Part shown: one piece after another, positions 23,848 to 31,598 of the stretch | How positions within the stretch are numbered: the stretch's first letter is position 1 | Layout: every line of letters begins with the position of its first letter | Assembly (NCBI GenBank): GCA_047495785.1 | Contig: JBLDXI010000014.1 | Span: 372,001-436,000 of the forward strand | From: Lepidodermella squamata | Lineage: Eukaryota; Animalia; Gastrotricha | Reading direction: 5' to 3' | Length of the DNA: 64,000 bases | Notes under the pieces: model-generated | What the model saw: the letters and a program-made list of their open reading frames with translations, nothing else | Databases searched by the model: none | What the model was told of the DNA's origin: nothing | Position numbers and translations under genes: made by a program

Positions 23848-24682
23848 ATGCACAAGAACTGGGTTCTAATAGCCGTCATATCTCTGCGTATTCAGATTTC
23901 TATCAGCGAAATAAATGGTAGGATTAATTGACATTTTATCCAAAATTTAATACCTTCATCACCAGAATTGAGAGAACTCGAGCGATTGCATATCAATTTC
24001 TGTTTCTTTTTTTTCAGTGAGAAGATGTTTTGCTATCGACTGGGTGCAATCGGCGACTCCTTTTCTGCGATTCGCTGAATCCCAACTCGGCAATATGTGC
24101 TGTGCGAAGGCGCGAAAAGATGGCCGCTCGCGCCTACTAAGTTTTTGCGACTCGCAGTGCTACGACAATCGAACGGCCGTTTTAACAAGCGAAACTCAGT
24201 ACCCAGTCTGCTTGAATAACAACTACCAGTTCCGCGGCATTGTCGCCACCACGTCGACCAACTGCAACTGGCAAACTATGACCGACTGTTTCTGCTGCTG
24301 GGCGTCGTCGAAATGCGGCGATTGCCCGGTGGAAAAAGAAAACCAGCGCATGTTCAACATCTCAATCTCAAATAACCTGAACCTTGCCAATAAAACACTG
24401 CTCGGCGTGACAACCACCAAAGCATCAAATTTGCCGACTACAACAATGCTGGCAAATGCTTTGGAAATAGGACTTGGCGTCGGGCTCGGTGTTGGCGGCG
24501 CTGTGATCATTGGCGCGGTTTGTGCTGCGATTTTCTGCGTCAAGCGAGGCGGAATTCGAGGCGTGTCTGATGTGACGACTCGATACACACTTTCGACTCC
24601 TCGCTATAACCGCTCGTCGCCAGAATTTTACACATCATTCACGAATTTACAATCTCCAAGAGTTGAAGAAATTCGATTCTAA
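23848..24682 (+). CDS. Type I membrane protein with 12-Cys ectodomain (intron 23918-24017)
   Basis: Signal-like exon MHKNWVLIAVISLRIQISIS spliced to ORF 24017..24682; Thr stalk, Gly-rich TM, Tyr-containing tail. Confidence 0.7.
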
Positions 24683-24920: not shown

Positions 24921-25740
24921 ATGGCGAGATTATTCATGCTATTTTTGGTCGTTTTTGTTTTGTTTTTCACTTCGTCCCATCAGCAAACGGATAGGTTTTT
25001 CGCGAACGTTTTGGACAAAGCGGGACCGGAACGATCGGAATCTCAGTATGGCGTCGCCAACATTAACGAACGAGGCTTTCTAAGCCTAGCTGCTGCCATC
25101 GTTCCTTCAATCTTATCTCTATTCAAGAAAAGTGGCGGTCCCAGTATTGGAGGTATTCACTTGACACATTTTTGCAAAGCGAATTTCCTAATCAGAGGCG
25201 TTTTTCAGGCCCTCTTTGTCCGAAGGTGAAGCAAAACGCCCAATTCGTGGATCAAGCCAGCGATTTCGACGCGGAATCTTACTCCCGACGCCGGCGTGAA
25301 GTTGGCGAAGAAGCCGAGCCCGCTGAAACTGCCGAGGAGCTCGAACCAGGATCTGCCCAAAACTCAACAAACGAGGTTACCGAAATCATTAAAATGTATC
25401 AATGTCCTAATTTGGTTGTTTTCAGGCCGTGCGATTTGGTTTCTACGGAGCTAGGGCTAAGCCAGGTGCCTTGTCGCGATCTCAACGCCACGCTTGCCGT
25501 CGTCACCAGGACTGCTCGAGATACGGCAAGGTCTGCTGTCCAGAGGGCACCGGGACCCGATCATTCACATGCCGCGCTCCCGTGCTTCACATGCAACCGG
25601 CGGGTAACGGCATTTTGATCAAACCACCGAAGCAGCAGCAACAACAGCAGCAGTTTCGGCCGCAAAGTCAGTCAAACTATCAACAACCCAATGACCAGTT
25701 CGACAATGCTGATTTTGACAATGCCAACGACTACTCCTGA
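24921..25740 (+). CDS. Secreted split-WAP-like precursor A (3 exons; introns 25153-25208 and 25376-25425)
   Basis: Signal peptide; GPLCP; SRRRR; acidic spacer; CRRHQDCSRYGKVCCPEGTGTRSFTCRAP; Gln-rich tail. Confidence 0.75.
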
Positions 25741-25933
25741 GTAAAATTTGCCTACAACTCCGCGCGATTGATATGAACATCAGTTGTAGTATCACCTTTG
25801 TTGATAATGAGTAAATAAAACGAAGCTGATTGGCAAATAAAATTGGTAGCATGTGGTGCACCACTTTAGCAGCAAGTTGCAATTGCATTTCGGTCATTTT
25901 ACTCCATTTTGTTGTGGTTTCAATTTATCTGGA

Positions 25934-26886
25934 ATGCTTGGGTTTCTCCTGTTAATTATTTCGGTTAGCGATGTTGCTGGTAAACCAATAATTATAGGTC
26001 TACTACCGCCGAACTTTGTCCTACGACGTCCCGCTGCCGTTATCCGACCGCCATCCAATGACCGAGCCGTGAATTTCGTCAATGAAGGAGACCTGCGCAT
26101 GATGTGGGCCAATCAGCAGTACTATTACAATGGTCCAGTTGGTAATAAACTATCTAAGGTTAACTTAGCGAATAGTGAGCCTATTTTGCCATCAGGGCCG
26201 TGCCCCTTCTATGATACCGATATAAACGCGCAAAATACTCAGGAAATTGTGTACGACAACAGACCAGGAGCGGGACAACTCCCTGGCGGAGGTCGGTTCA
26301 ACCAGCCAGGTGAGGACTTATCGATGTCCGGCAATAATGCCCTGAGACCGAATTCGCGAATGGTTCGTCCTATTACAACGACAGGTAAACTTTCCAATTT
26401 TAAACGATTAGCACTTATATTGTAAACGCAGCTGGAAACATCAGCGACTCAGAATATCGGTAAGAAAAACTTTGGTTGAATTATTCCTGAACCAATCATT
26501 TGCTTTTTTCTGATTCAGTGGTGAAGTCATTGAATACCCTGAGGTTTGCTTTGTACGTGGATTTAAGCGCCCATTTTAATTATTTTTGCCAGAATGAAAG
26601 TACGGATCGCGCATATGACGGCCGGGCAATCCGCGAGTCCGTGGAGGACAACCGAAATTCGGAATGGCTGCGGCAACAAGGAAATGCAAACGGTTTTCTG
26701 CCCATTTGCAACAACGACGGCGACTGTTCACGCCTGAGTCAGCAAACGAATCAGTGGCTGATCTGTTGCCCGCTTGGCCGACTACGGCGAATTTACACCT
26801 GCATGCTGCCGGCTCGAGGCTACGGTTCTAACATGTTTTACAACGGCGGCTACAATGGAGCCAACCAATTTTATGGTGGAAAATGA
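25934..26886 (+). CDS. Secreted split-WAP-like precursor B (5 exons including two microexons)
   Basis: Signal MLGFLLLIISVSDVAG; GPCP after phase-1 intron 26142-26195; CNNDGDC..ICCPLGRLRRIYTCMLP; ends FYGGK. Confidence 0.7.
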
Positions 26887-28082
26887 GACCTCTTCTCTTT
26901 TACCATTTAACTTGGATGATACTGTCGCTTTTCCGCGCTTATCGGGCTTGGGAGCCTCGACGGAAGGTTCAACCCTTCATCGTTCTTTACACTAGTTGTT
27001 TTGTTTGAATACTTCGAAGTAAAATTGAAGATCGACTGCGCGTAATACATATTTTGATTGGAAAAATTAAATTTTGAATGTGGGAGCGAGAGCATCAATC
27101 ACCATTAAAAGAGAGGGCAACTGGCGACTTCGCGTCGAAATTCTGCATAGTGCGCACATAATCGACGAATAGAATATATGACCAGCTTTCAATCATTTGC
27201 AGCCGAAAAATAGCCGAAAAAGACGGAATAGGAGTTGGGAAAAAGCAGACCAGGGAGGGCCGGCTTAAGGAAACAACGATCAATCCTAATAAGACGCAAA
27301 CGGGTTTTTAGACTAATCACCAAGTTCTTCCGCGACTTCGCAAAACGTGTCGAACTACCGCAGTCACTCATGTGCGACATCGTCATTTCAACGATAAAAG
27401 ACTCATGCAAAATCATAAATAATCATCTGTACAGAAAGAATTAGTCAAATGTAAATACCCGTGTCTATAGGCAAACTGTTACTTAGTTTCAGTCGGATCA
27501 TTGTTTTAACAATAAACTACCCTAGAAGAAAGTCCAGCGTCGTGGAAAGGTTGTAAGCCTAAAGGTTTCCAAATTATTCAGCACTTCAGAATGACGATAA
27601 AAGCAGACCGGTAAAATATTTACCCATTTTACTCATGCAGCTGCAAGTCGTCCAATTTGTACCTATTAGAATCTCATCCTCACCATACTACAGGTTCAAG
27701 CCACAGGTTCAGTATATGTAGGATTGACGTGTATATTCAACTCAAAACTCATGCCATCATTCAACTTTCCATTTTACTTCAAGCTATGAGATTCAATCCT
27801 ATCTATATGATCCTAACAAGATCATCTTAACAATCCTAAGAAATTCATTCTAACAGATGACAAGGTGGAAGTTTTCGCAGAACTTCGAAATATGGCGCAA
27901 GGTGATTACGCCTCAATCACGCAGCTAGCCAAACATCTGGCTCGTAAAATCAAATATTTTTGTTAGCTCAGCTCTCGTGTCTCGATGTGACCTGTTATAA
28001 AGGGTGACCTTATCGAGTTTAAGATTATCATTCTGCTCGTCGCAAAATCTGAATTCAGCGGTTAGACTGAACTTGACAGAGA

Positions 28083-28906
28083 ATGTCGCTGAAGGATTTA
28101 ACTATTAGTCTCATAATCACCCTTCTGCTATGCAAAGTAAGTTCTTCTGCTGAGGCTAGATCAGAATCCTCGGAAGATCGCAATTTCGGATTCAACCAAC
28201 CTGGAATGTTCGGTTATAATAATGGCATGTATGGTCCAGGAAATGGCGGTAAGTATGAGCTAACTAGCGCATGCAAATCGCTATGAGTGGTTGTTTTTAG
28301 TACCTCCCGAATTGGTTTGCCCAGCCCCCCACGAAGCGCTGATTGGTGAGTTCTCGATGATTTTCCCTGTAATTTTGTACTCACTCATAAAAATTTGATT
28401 ATAGCCTATCTTCGCGCTGGCCCTTGCGCCAATGATCCCGTTTTCGAAGCGGCGTCACCAACGGGAGGAAACGGGTTCGTACCAGGAGCTAGGATTCGCC
28501 GACGGCGTGATGCGCCAATTATCGAAGAAATTGTTGATCCTGATTCAGTCGTAAGCATATCGCTGCGAAAATGTTCAGCTTTTTATAATTCTTTTACCAC
28601 AGGTCGTTGAAGTGCCAACTGACAAGGTAGGATTTTTCATTACATGCTTTTGGGTGTTGTGATTGATTCTGTTGAGTATAGCCAACGATCCCTGCTGTAA
28701 CTACCGGAGTCCCCCTCGCGATGACTGTAGCACCACCTGCGGCTCGCCAGCAGCGCTTTCGGTCGCTTTGCGCTAATGACCAGCAATGTCCCGGCGGTTA
28801 TCTATGCTGCCCAACTGGCTTAGAACGCTTTGTGTGCTCGATCCCTGTTCGACGTGGCGCTCCTGCTCCAGTTAATCCTTGGCAGATGGGAGGAATGGGC
28901 CGCTGA
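28083..28906 (+). CDS. Secreted split-WAP-like precursor C (5 exons)
   Basis: Signal; Gly/Asn-rich segment; ELVCP; extra GPC; IRRRR; acidic spacer; CANDQQCPGGYLCCPTGLERFVCSIP; ends MGGMGR. Confidence 0.75.
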
Positions 28907-29937
28907 AAATGATCAGCAGAGACTCAACTGACTCAACTCTTGCGTTTTTATTGTTGTTTTACATTTTTGAAAATCTGGAAAGAAATAAACATGAGATATA
29001 ACCCATCATATCTTAATTATTTTCATAGAAGAATAGTTGAATCAACTAGTTTTGACCGTGAAATTGATGAATACATTGATTCCATTGATGGGCGAAAAAC
29101 TAGAAGCGGAACCAATATGTTTAAACGGAGCTAACAGCTAGTGGAGCTGAGAAGAGCGAATGCTGGGAATTTTTCAACTTTCGTAACTTGTCAAAAACTT
29201 TTCATCAATGCGCAGAAAATAGCACAGAATTATTGATAATGTCGTTACCAAGATCAGTCTGAATATTCTCGGAAAACTCATTTTTTGGCTCAATTAAAAT
29301 TTAATCTGGGTTCCACAACGGCAAAACACAAGAAAGCCCGAAAATATGCCGACAGTAACACAACTACTACGCCGATAAAATTGATCTGCAAACCTGACGC
29401 GGAGCTTTTACCACCCATTTCATTTTGAAACCCTCGGCAAAAAGTCAGGAATATTTTCAATGATTCATTTTATCTAATTTCCATGACGTTTCCTAAAACG
29501 GTACTAAAACGGCGCGCCAAACGTCCCAGGTTCCATCTTCAGTACGAATCGGCAGCAACCCTGAAAAAACATGAAGAAGAAGCTCATCAAAATTAATGCT
29601 CAAACCCCAAATTTATTGAGAGTGGAGAGTGGAAAAGTTGGGAAGCTTCTATAAACATATTTTAGATTGGGCTACCACACCTTCACCGTATTTTGCGCGC
29701 GTGCCGTAAATTATCTAAACATGGCGCGATATAGGACGAGTGAAGCGTGCCTGTAAATTAAACGTAATCAGGTGTTCGCGCGCGCGCCCTCAACCAGATG
29801 GGCTCGTGTCAAGTTATGGCAGCCCTCTTCAAACTAGTTTTTAGTCACATAGATATGACGCATTTCTAGCACATCTTTTATTTCAAATTCAATGTTTCCT
29901 ATAACTTTTAAATCATTTGCCTATAGAACATTTTATC

Positions 29938-31598
29938 ATGACAACAACAATCGCAGTTTTTGCCGTCGTCGCTTTGTTGGGACGTAGCTCATTCGGTCAA
30001 AACATGGCTGGAATGGGTGGTAATATGGGCGGCCCAGGAATGGGTGGCATGGGCGGACCTGGCATGGGAATGGGTATGGGAATGCCTGGAGGTGACATGA
30101 GTGGCATGGGCGGTGGCATGGGCATGCCTGGTGCTGGTGCTATGGGCGGCTATCCCGGTGCTGGAATGAACAATCCAGGTAAAGAATGAAGCCTTTAATA
30201 TCTTATTTCTTTACCCACTCATAATCGTAGGGTACGGAATGGGAGCAGGTGCCCAAGGATATGGCCCGATGGGAGGTTTGCTTTATCCTAAGAGGTGGTT
30301 CGCTTTTTTACTTTTTTCGCACAGGACAAGGAGGACTTTCGTGTCCGCCAATCGGAGGGGCCATGAACCCAGGTTATTCGAACGTCTTTTACATTATATC
30401 ATATTTTAATTAAATTAATTATTTGCTTTTCACAGGATTCGGACAGCCTGGATTCGGCCAACCTGGTTTCGGCCAGCCTGGTGAGTAACCAAGATCTTTT
30501 AGGTTTCTCTGAACATTCGGCTTTATTTAGGCATGGGAATGAATGGCATGGGCGACATGTCCGGTATGAACGGCATGCAGGGCATGAATGGTATGCAAGG
30601 CATGAACGGCGGTATGCAAGGCATGAACGGCGGTATGCAAGGCATGAACGGCGGCATGCAGGGCATGAACGGCATGAACGGTATGGGTATGCAAGGCGGC
30701 ATGAACGGGATGAACCCCATGGGTGATATGAGTGGCATGGGACGTCGCCGGCGAGCCGCCGATGAAGAGCTGACGATCGAAATCGTTGAAAACGATGGAA
30801 CTGTGAGGAGCCTTTAGTTTGCTTTGACATATCACTTATCTGAATCCTCTTGCCTTTTGCCAGCCCGCACCGCCTACAAACGTCGAATCCAGGGGAGATA
30901 ATGTGAGTAATACTACTTGAATTGATCGCTGTGATCTTCCATGTTGACCTGATTGATGATTTTGCCATCATTTGAATGTGATTTTTATTAGGCTGCACCT
31001 GCAGGTTCAGATGCCGACTCGCTTATTTCTCAAATTGAAAACACTGGTGAATCATTCCCGTCATCTGCTGGTAACTCCGCTCCTACCCAAGAAGCCGGAA
31101 ATCTGCCAGAGCAAAAAGCCCGCAAAAACCAAGGTGGTAACAACGCAGTTTGCATGAACGACCAGCAGTGCTCGAATGGCCTGATGTGTTGCCCGACGAA
31201 CTCGGGTCGCAACTTGTGCACGGCGCCGATCCGTAGCGGAATGGCTGGCATGGATCCGAATATGATGGGTAAATATGAACTTTTGAATTAATCGAAATTG
31301 CTCATCAATTGTTAATTTTATAGGCGCCGGAATGGGAGCTCCAGGCATGGGAAACATGGGCATGGGTATGGGTGGTGCAGGAATGGGTGCCATGGGTATG
31401 GGTCCTGGAATGGGCGCTCCTGGTATGGGTAACCCGGGAATGGGTGGTGCCGGAATGGGTGGCATGGGTATGGGGCCAGGTATGGGATCTCCGGGAATGG
31501 GTGGCCCTGGTATGGGTGGCCCTGGTATGGGTGGTCCGGGTATGGGTGGTAATATGGGTGGCATGGGGCCTGGTGGAATGGGCGGCCGTCGTCGCTGA
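29938..31598 (+). CDS. Secreted Gly/Met-rich split-WAP-like precursor D (8 exons)
   Basis: Signal; GM repeats; GLSCP; (GFGQP)3; GMNGGMQ repeats; GRRRR; acidic spacer with RGD; CMNDQQCSNGLMCCPTNSGRNLCTAP; GMGGP tail ending GGRRR. Confidence 0.8.
30560..30705 (+). repeat. Coding tandem repeat, 18-21 nt units (GMNG[G]MQ)
   Basis: ggcatgaacggcggtatgcaa units visible in the sequence. Confidence 0.85.

Follow-up and report, generated by a model that had tools for sequence, protein, structure and literature searches.

A secreted protein family of the gastrotrich Lepidodermella squamata with a WAP-derived cysteine module and a candidate first cysteine far upstream

Introduction

Between positions 24921 and 31598 of a 64,000-nucleotide stretch of the Lepidodermella squamata genome (contig JBLDXI010000014.1; hereafter the window) lie four tandem genes on the plus strand, termed A–D here, each encoding a lone Cys-Pro motif far upstream of a compact cysteine module. 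The locus raises the question of whether the lone cysteine and the module belong to one disulfide-bonded domain interrupted by a long linker and, if so, what purpose such a precursor would serve. A first-pass annotation, made from the letters alone, had proposed secreted precursors with a WAP-like disulfide core split by a mostly furin-cleavable linker. From the genes and their splicing, the WAP homology, the size of the family and its conservation in a second species, we infer, with a probability of about 60% for the explanation as a whole, that A–D are expressed and belong to a lineage-specific family of secreted pro-proteins whose scaffold is a WAP domain lacking the C2–C7 disulfide, in which the lone cysteine would bond to C6 and the linker would be cut, giving a crustin-like secretion.

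WAP domains contain eight cysteines, with disulfides 1–6, 2–7, 3–5 and 4–8. This numbering (C1–C8) is used throughout.

Gene models and transcript evidence

The four genes were modelled by hand with short GT..AG introns of the eukaryotic type, giving four complete reading frames with introns of 47–89 nt. Gene A (24921..25740) encodes 237 residues in three exons (24921–25152, 25209–25375 and 25426–25740), gene B (25934..26886) 247 residues in five exons (25934–26141, 26196–26384, 26432–26459, 26519–26543 and 26593–26886), gene C (28083..28906) 201 residues in five exons (28083–28248, 28301–28345, 28405–28550, 28603–28626 and 28682–28906) and gene D (29938..31598) 413 residues in eight exons (29938–30178, 30231–30275, 30325–30372, 30436–30480, 30531–30802, 30864–30902, 30992–31268 and 31324–31598).

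One sequencing run (X1), which holds about one third of the sampled words of the region, is complementary DNA (cDNA) and not genomic DNA, as shown by the SMART oligo attached to the 3' end of gene C at position 28950. Its contigs skip the modelled introns at the exact borders (four of four in B, four of four in C and seven of seven in D). GT..AG joints are present for all seven introns of D, for three of C and for introns 2, 3 and 4 of B, the joint of intron 4 belonging to a divergent allele; intron 1 of B and the one further intron of C are represented by matching loose ends. The comparison covered genes B–D; the two introns of gene A are modelled, the gene being backed otherwise by a collinear single-exon relative (P0010, see below). 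The Cys-Pro motifs of C and D lie on mini-exons of phase 1-1 (28301–28345, 45 nt, and 30325–30372, 48 nt), both of which are included in the cDNA contigs. Strain differences in gene C comprise 12 synonymous against six changed codons and leave the cysteines untouched. Because the cDNA joints match the models and synonymous differences are in excess in gene C, the window genes are real, expressed and constrained. The splicing that had been read from the letters alone is thus borne out for every intron of B, C and D, and among the listed joints of gene C the form that includes the Cys-Pro exon is the only one.

In one cDNA contig, the 25-nt micro-exon of gene B (exon 4, 26519–26543) is replaced by 24 different letters. 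This divergent allele or strain variant is one base shorter as listed and would cause a frameshift unless its borders differ.

Shared precursor layout

All four genes share the same order of parts: a hydrophobic start resembling a signal peptide, a variable cargo, a phase-1 intron, the lone Cys-Pro, a linker, the cysteine module and a low-complexity tail. The Cys-Pro lies two to six residues past the phase-1 intron, or directly after it in B. It is found in gene A at 25217..25222 (GGPLCP, residues 81–82, two residues after the intron), in gene B at 26201..26206 (VGPCP, residues 72–73, present in the cDNA), in gene C at 28318..28323 (ELVCP, residues 62–63) and in gene D at 30342..30347 (GGLSCP, residues 102–103). 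From there to C3, the first cysteine of the module, the distance is 75 residues in A, 116 in B, 94 in C and 181 in D, a stretch that lies partly on other exons.

Within this linker, RRRR followed by an acidic spacer occurs in A (residue 104; 25286..25297, then EVGEEAEP...), in C (residue 102; 28497..28508, then the acidic and hydrophobic spacer DAPIIEEIVDPD) and in D (residue 198; 30743..30754, then the acidic spacer AADEELTIEIVEND); it is absent from gene B, the exons of which are confirmed by RNA. The cargo of gene A is hydrophobic and only moderately amphipathic (hydrophobic moment 0.43, hydrophobicity 0.49), and the protein ends in a tail of β-hairpin type followed by a Q/N-rich terminus. 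In gene B it is the tail, not an N-terminal cargo, that is rich in Gly, Tyr and Asn, and the terminus is GGK. The cargo of gene C is rich in Gly, Asn, Tyr and Met (18% Gly) and its terminus is MGR, while gene D is Gly/Met-rich in cargo, loop and tail (46% Gly and 21–25% Met) and ends in GGRRR. The termini of B, C and D are all of a Gly-plus-basic kind.

Since a Pro comes directly after the lone Cys in each of the seven genes that make up the sub-branch of the window genes (A–D, a nearby paralogue termed L005, P0010 and the neighbour of P0010) and a profile of the module finds paralogues at E values of about 1e-15, the shared pattern is, to judge from sequence, not due to chance. The layout described by the first-pass annotation is present element by element in all four genes, from the models and, for B–D, from the cDNA, as is the RRRR motif with its spacer in three of them. 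Its finer description needs some amendment: around the invariant C, C, CC-P, C and P of the module the second gap spans 5–12 residues (6, 12, 5 and 5 in A–D), slightly beyond the 5–11 given, the peptide of A is only moderately amphipathic and the Tyr/Asn richness of B is located in its tail.

Gene C has an additional cysteine (28425..28427, AGPCA, residue 78), bringing its mature cysteine count to the odd number of seven. It thereby combines a Cys-Pro mini-exon like that of D with a GPC just past the next phase-1 intron like that of B (exon 3, 28405–28550). Skipping of the 45-nt mini-exon would keep the reading frame and restore an even count; the listed joints show it included.

The cysteine module and its relation to WAP domains

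The module reads C-x5-C-x(5,6,12)-CC-P-x(7-10)-C-x2-P across the four genes: C-x5-C-x6-CC-P-x9-C-x2-P in A (25495..25581), C-x5-C-x12-CC-P-x9-C-x2-P in B (26707..26811) and C-x5-C-x5-CC-P-x8-C-x2-P in both C (28769..28846) and D (31151..31228). Scores above the gathering cut-off of the Pfam WAP model (PF00095; 20.8 bits, model length 41) were obtained for gene C (28.4 bits, last exon, model positions 10–41), gene D (22.3 bits, exon 7, positions 15–41) and the paralogue L005 (24.3 bits). The paralogues on contig C74 (see below) score less than the cut-off, as do genes A and B, and all of these are joined to WAP only through the family profile. Alignment of this profile (nine family modules) with a WAP profile (eight canonical eight-Cys WAPs of this genome and four six-Cys WAPs) using hhalign gave a probability of 95.5% and an E value of 1.5e-8, with C3, C4, C5C6 and C8 aligned. 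The same cysteines were matched in weak alignments of gene C with the PDB sequences of nawaprin and omwaprin (E 0.6–0.8), where the C2 and C7 positions of nawaprin correspond to F and L in gene C.

Genes A, B and D have exactly six mature cysteines, in the pattern C1, C3, C4, C5, C6 and C8. None of the four proteins has the eight cysteines and four disulfides of a canonical WAP domain, each having five module cysteines and one distant cysteine, and none has a contiguous domain of about 40–50 residues starting with G-x-C-P, Pfam aligning A–D only from model position 10 or 15 or not at all. By these comparisons the module is WAP-derived and has lost the C2–C7 disulfide, in keeping with the WAP-like core and the missing C2/C7 pair first proposed for it.

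Two other assignments were considered. Matches of the whole-family module profile to squash knottins in the PDB were at chance level (E 0.24–1), and a knottin identity was rejected in view of the WAP matches from Pfam, the waprin alignment and hhalign. A match of gene A to the Pfam Conotoxin I-superfamily (E 0.035, under the cut-off) was rejected as noise from the cysteine pattern.

Family size and a relative in a second species

A module-profile search of the 121 Mb L. squamata assembly produced 20 matches at E < 1e-3, four of them in the window, about 15 on contig C74 (0.87–1.14 Mb) and one on contig C13. A WAP search added L005 (G000:C14:464000-473000, minus strand), a D-like paralogue about 33 kb past the end of the window with a signal peptide, Gly/Met repeats, GGMCP on its own exon, RRKR/RARR with an acidic spacer, the module and a Gly/Met-rich tail. 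The family is lineage-specific and fast-evolving and, by this count, comprises at least 21 genes in two clusters; the four window genes are indeed related, as first noted, but belong to a far larger family than the tandem group of four then described.

The C74 genes are mostly single-exon and encode a signal peptide, an acidic stretch, a Trp/Leu-rich peptide and a lone cysteine in V-G-G-P/K/A-x-C, followed by an Asp/Glu/Gly-rich linker of 30–65 residues, often with a basic site, a module with a charge of +4 to +10 and a short β-hairpin tail. Gene A, which is closest to this branch, is its representative in the window.

A single relative was found outside this genome, a single-exon protein of 260 residues from metagenome assemblies (P0010/P0026). 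It is collinear with gene A, having a signal peptide, a Trp-rich peptide, AGGPWCP, RHKR with an acidic spacer, a module with the same Y-G-K-V-C-C and the same tail. The gene that follows it in tandem on a 35 kb contig encodes a signal peptide, GERCP, a Gly/Met/Tyr-rich region, RRRRRR with an acidic spacer, a CC-P module and a G/Y/M/Q tail ending in GMGRR. This pair, an A-like gene and a Gly/Met-rich gene (L031, ENA ERZ23486787, 8414-10998), is from a eukaryote in an environmental metagenome, a sister contig of which (L025) has a G+C content of 38%. The tandem arrangement and every feature of the layout are thus kept across a sequence divergence of about 70–75%, and this conservation is the strongest argument that the lone cysteine, the basic site, the spacer and the Gly-plus-basic end are functional.

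Searches for further relatives gave P0010 as the only true member among 1.84 billion representatives (module profile) and as the only match among 5.8 billion proteins (full-length family profile), and P0010 had no match among metagenome contigs of the Joint Genome Institute (JGI). Neither profile search recovered a full-length match to a described family, so the architecture is as unfamiliar as the first-pass annotation held it to be. Because the module profile missed the D-like neighbour of P0010, although this protein is in the collection searched, searches with such a short module miss real members.

Contiguous six-cysteine WAP domains

After the family itself, the best module-profile matches among the 1.84 billion representatives were WAP proteins of Trichuris, Trichinella and the mayfly Ephemera. 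These are contiguous six-Cys domains (G-x-C-P, about 14 residues, then C-x5-C-x5-CC-P-x7-C-x2-P) that match the full length of the Pfam WAP model (positions 1–41 at 60–75 bits for P0009, P0011, P0014 and P0017). The six-Cys form has been reported as a trichocephalid novelty (Foth et al., 2014, PMC5012510). L. squamata itself has a contiguous six-Cys WAP (L027; G000:C17:2130300-2130700, minus strand; Pfam WAP 30.2 bits) with GQCP, a C1–C3 loop of 21 residues, C-x5-C-x5-CCP, 20 residues and C-x2-P, which may represent an intermediate step in evolution from eight-Cys WAPs to the split family. Since six-Cys WAPs are known in trichocephalids and present in this genome, the step from eight to six cysteines is already documented and the expansion of the C1–C3 loop is the new step.

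The domains of the Trichuris and Trichinella proteins, which are SLPI-like, retain the same six cysteines as the split family, having lost C2 and C7, and share with it the CC-P, the seven to nine residues to the last cysteine and the x2-P. However, they are contiguous (about 45 residues, with C1 about 14 residues before C3), often occur as one to nine repeats and match the Pfam model in full, whereas in the split family a single module follows an acidic loop, often with a convertase site, that places C1 75–181 residues upstream (30–65 in most C74 paralogues).

Pairing of the lone cysteine

The WAP pairing scheme leaves only C6 unpaired among the five module cysteines, and its partner is C1, so that the lone upstream cysteine is the candidate partner of C6. 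We lean towards an intramolecular C1–C6 bond in which the lone Cys-Pro would represent C1 of the WAP domain. The lone cysteine is invariant in the 13 aligned full-length members and present in every gene model examined; an even number of mature cysteines is found in 15–16 of 17 members, any extra cysteines being present in pairs. In a full-length AlphaFold2 (AF2) model of a single-exon paralogue, the predicted local distance difference test score (pLDDT) is 74 at the lone-Cys segment, 53–59 in the linker and 83–85 in the module, with a helical turn at C-x2-H-x-D-C and a β-hairpin carrying CC and the last cysteine. When a truncated AF2 model was compared with 48,161 PDB chains, only omwaprin reached Z ≥ 2 (Z 2.2, root-mean-square deviation 3.9 Å, 40 residues), in an alignment that starts at the lone-Cys segment of the model and just before C1 of omwaprin.

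Several results weigh against this pairing. The omwaprin match is weak, and all but about five residues of the lone-Cys segment have a pLDDT below 50 in the truncated model. A profile of the lone-Cys segment did not align with the N-terminus of the WAP profile in hhalign, and nothing usable came from Foldseek searches of the PDB with both AF2 models, from a further PDB shape comparison or from shape-based and feature-based searches of the ESM Atlas. In the C74 branch the lone cysteine is followed by E or G and not by P, and gene C has its odd count of seven. VIA-align of the full-length AF2 model was dominated by the long N-terminal helix. A complex prediction for one paralogue cut at its basic site (L001:4617-5090:-, residues 44–105 with 106–158) had an interaction prediction score from aligned errors (ipSAE) of 0.03, which counts neither for nor against the bond.

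The cysteines could instead be used differently, with the lone cysteine and the fifth cysteine of the module forming bonds between molecules (dimers or polymers), or with the lone cysteine capping the module temporarily and leaving with the N-terminal pro-piece, after which the freed cationic module would dimerize or keep a free thiol. The C74 branch indeed resembles prepro-defensins in having an acidic pro-piece, a basic site 1–15 residues before the module and a cationic module; the seven cysteines of gene C would also fit, and neither the complex prediction nor the lone-Cys profile comparison lends support to docking. Nevertheless, we regard this alternative as unlikely: the lone cysteine is invariant while extra cysteines come only in pairs, it is kept in members that have no basic site (B, L001b, L010, L012 and L013), the omwaprin alignment, weak as it is, places it at C1, and the contiguous six-Cys WAPs show the same set of six cysteines working within one domain.

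Processing and proposed mechanism

A multi-basic site, where present, is always between the lone cysteine and the module, and there is a single site per precursor. The furin-type motif R-x-K/R-R is found in eight of 17 tabulated members (A, C, D, L001a, three L011 genes and P0010) and, by eye, also in L002, L009, L005 and the metagenome neighbour of P0010. Its absence from B and from about half of the wider family is a point against a cut linker as a general feature. Since gene B and several C74 genes have no such site, cleavage, as predicted from these motifs, is an option within the family and not its defining step.

Gly-plus-basic ends are substrates of carboxypeptidases and amidating enzymes, and the C-termini of B, C and D are therefore candidates for amidation. 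The genome contains at least ten matches to convertase P domains and at least 35 to copper monooxygenases of the PHM/DBH type, so that convertase and amidation machinery is plausibly available. Most of the latter matches (PF01082, copper type II ascorbate-dependent monooxygenase) form a single cluster on C13 (1.99–2.36 Mb), many with in-frame stops, and one lies inside the C74 cluster of the split family (G000:C74:1032359-1032634); such an expansion is unusual for an animal.

In the mechanism that we propose, loss of the C2–C7 disulfide would have freed the C1–C3 stretch as a loop pinned only at its ends, which could then have grown to 30–180 residues with an acidic spacer and, in about half of the members, a furin-type site. 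The signal peptide would direct the precursor to the endoplasmic reticulum, where the module would form the C3–C5 and C4–C8 disulfides and the second cysteine of CC (C6) would bond to the lone Cys-Pro (C1). A proprotein convertase would cut after RRRR in A, C and D, a carboxypeptidase would trim the arginines and the termini of B, C and D (GGK, MGR and GGRRR) would be amidated. The mature product would be a variable N-terminal chain, consisting of a hydrophobic peptide or of a Gly/Asn/Tyr-rich or Gly/Met-rich stretch, held by one disulfide to a second chain made up of spacer, WAP-like knot and tail; gene B would give a single chain. We put forward only tentatively the fuller form of this idea, a WAP `disulfide clasp' in which C1, up to 181 residues upstream, and a convertase-cut acidic loop would yield a two-chain product carrying interchangeable cargo, either a membrane-active peptide or material rich in Gly/Tyr or Gly/Met.

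Possible functions

A crustin-like defensive or surface secretion is the role that we suggest, at somewhat less than even odds and by analogy. In gene A and the C74 genes an acidic pro-region and a basic site go together with a cationic disulfide knot, and C, D, L005 and the metagenome neighbour of P0010 combine a Gly-rich region with a WAP-type domain as Type II crustins do, both of which favour defence. On the other hand, the modules of C and D are not cationic (charges of −1 and 0), unlike those of typical antimicrobial WAPs, and Gly/Met- and Gly/Tyr-rich low complexity fits structural materials equally well. The proteins might thus be components of cuticle scales, egg shell or adhesive tubes, with the low-complexity parts as the material and the WAP-like knot and lone cysteine as a cross-link or anchor, in the manner of Lustrin A or trappins. 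The Gly and Met content of the gene D cargo and tail, the G/Y/N-rich parts of B and C, the long Gly/Met/Tyr-rich regions kept in L005 and the metagenome neighbour and the non-cationic modules of C and D are all consistent with such a role, in which the odd cysteine of gene C could form a cross-link. We consider this possibility somewhat less likely than defence, since low-complexity material is lacking from gene A and the C74 branch, which show the classic layout of antimicrobial precursors (hydrophobic peptide, acidic pro-region and cationic module), and since bioactive peptides are the more usual context for convertase sites and amidation-type ends.

The same convertase sites and Gly-plus-basic ends, together with the convertases and PHM-like enzymes of the genome, would also suit precursors of peptide hormones or neuropeptides, in which the signalling would be done by amidated peptides, either hydrophobic or of low complexity, with the WAP-like part acting as carrier. 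There is, however, one internal site per precursor and no series of repeated peptide copies between dibasic sites, the products would be low-complexity chains of 40–180 residues, and large, fast-evolving tandem families are typical of defence and secretions rather than of signalling, so that this is the least probable of the roles considered. Inhibition of serine proteases, as by SLPI, elafin or the Trichuris WAPs, is only slightly less improbable. The protease-binding loop of elafin and SLPI lies in the C1–C3 loop, and RRRR within the corresponding loop of a WAP homologue could serve as bait for trypsin-like or furin-like proteases. Yet this loop is 75–181 residues long, acidic and predicted to be disordered (pLDDT 53–59 or below 50), unlike a rigid canonical loop; C2, which frames it in WAP domains, has been lost, and B and many paralogues have no basic site. 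A defensive or surface secretion therefore remains our working proposal.

Neighbouring features

Two other features of the window adjoin the genes described here. Between B and C, the interval 27245–27634 has a depth of about 950–1400 in the DNA-like run X2, compared with about 45–140 elsewhere, and is probably an intergenic repeat of high copy number or a piece of a transposon. The plus-strand open reading frame at 24017–24682, a short way upstream of gene A, encodes a Cys-rich ectodomain, a stalk rich in Thr, a membrane span rich in Gly and Val and a short tail, and seems to be part of a type I membrane protein unrelated to the split family.

Comparison with known systems

WAP domains and their six-Cys variant are already known. 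Two aspects have no match in the databases and papers searched and appear to be new: a WAP-type core with its candidate C1 30–180 residues upstream, across an acidic and often convertase-cleavable loop, and a family of at least 21 such split WAPs with interchangeable cargo. The literature searched contained nothing relevant on split or furin-processed WAPs or on gastrotrich secretions, and the first genome of a gastrotrich dates from as late as 2024 (PMC11660948). Provided that both the bond and the cleavage are real, the family would illustrate a route from a compact disulfide domain to a split, processable scaffold, through loss of a disulfide and the freeing, expansion and cutting of a loop, and a processing architecture not described for any WAP protein. 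It would then be the first candidate secreted effector or defence family for Gastrotricha and, if the two-chain clasp holds, the principal family of secreted effectors in a phylum whose molecular biology is almost unexplored. The retention of the six cysteines, the position of the site and the amidation-type ends across species despite fast evolution makes the family tractable for disulfide mapping and peptidomics and for the testing of new peptides as antimicrobials or material formers. Should the bond turn out not to exist, a family confined to this lineage and bearing a degenerate WAP module would be left, a finding of modest interest.

Crustins, especially those of Type II, resemble the split family in layout, since their signal peptide is accompanied by an N-terminal region that is hydrophobic or made up of Gly-rich repeats and their WAP-type domain lies in the C-terminal part, and they too form large, diverse and lineage-specific families. 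They are defined by a canonical eight-Cys WAP at the C-terminus and a preceding Cys-rich crustin signature (PMC9680087), whereas A–D have neither an eight-Cys WAP nor a Cys-rich region before the module. Conversely, a long processed linker within the WAP domain, a low-complexity tail following that domain and Met-rich repeats are all lacking in crustins, which occur only in crustaceans and some insects. The Gly content of Type II crustins (> 30%, in N-terminal repeats) is matched by gene D (46%, in short repeats) but not by C (18%) or by A and B, which are not Gly-rich, so that the resemblance is one of layout only.

The snake-venom waprins (omwaprin, PDB entry 3NGG, and nawaprin, 1UDK) provide the best sequence and fold matches to the module in the PDB, weak as these are (E 0.6–0.8; Z 2.2), and are likewise small secreted proteins with a single WAP domain; omwaprin is antibacterial. 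They differ in being contiguous 50-residue proteins with eight cysteines and no cargo or pro-region. Trappins (elafin) and Lustrin A couple their WAP domain to a functionally separate repetitive region, which is a transglutaminase-substrate anchor in trappins and consists of Gly/Ser-rich elastic loops in Lustrin A. In both, however, the WAP domain is intact and the repeats lie outside it, not inside the C1–C3 loop.

A more distant likeness is to insulin and relaxin and to the napin-type 2S albumins, in which the precursor folds, disulfides span a linker, the linker is cut and the chains stay bonded, as may happen in the split family. There is no relation in sequence or fold, no insulin-family match having been found in Pfam scans of the window genes and paralogues, and only one inter-chain bond is predicted here. 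The insulin-like logic of the first-pass annotation therefore survives only as a loose analogy: insulin excises a C-peptide between two dibasic sites, whereas the split precursors have one site each, so that no C-peptide would be released and the acidic spacer would stay on the C-terminal chain.

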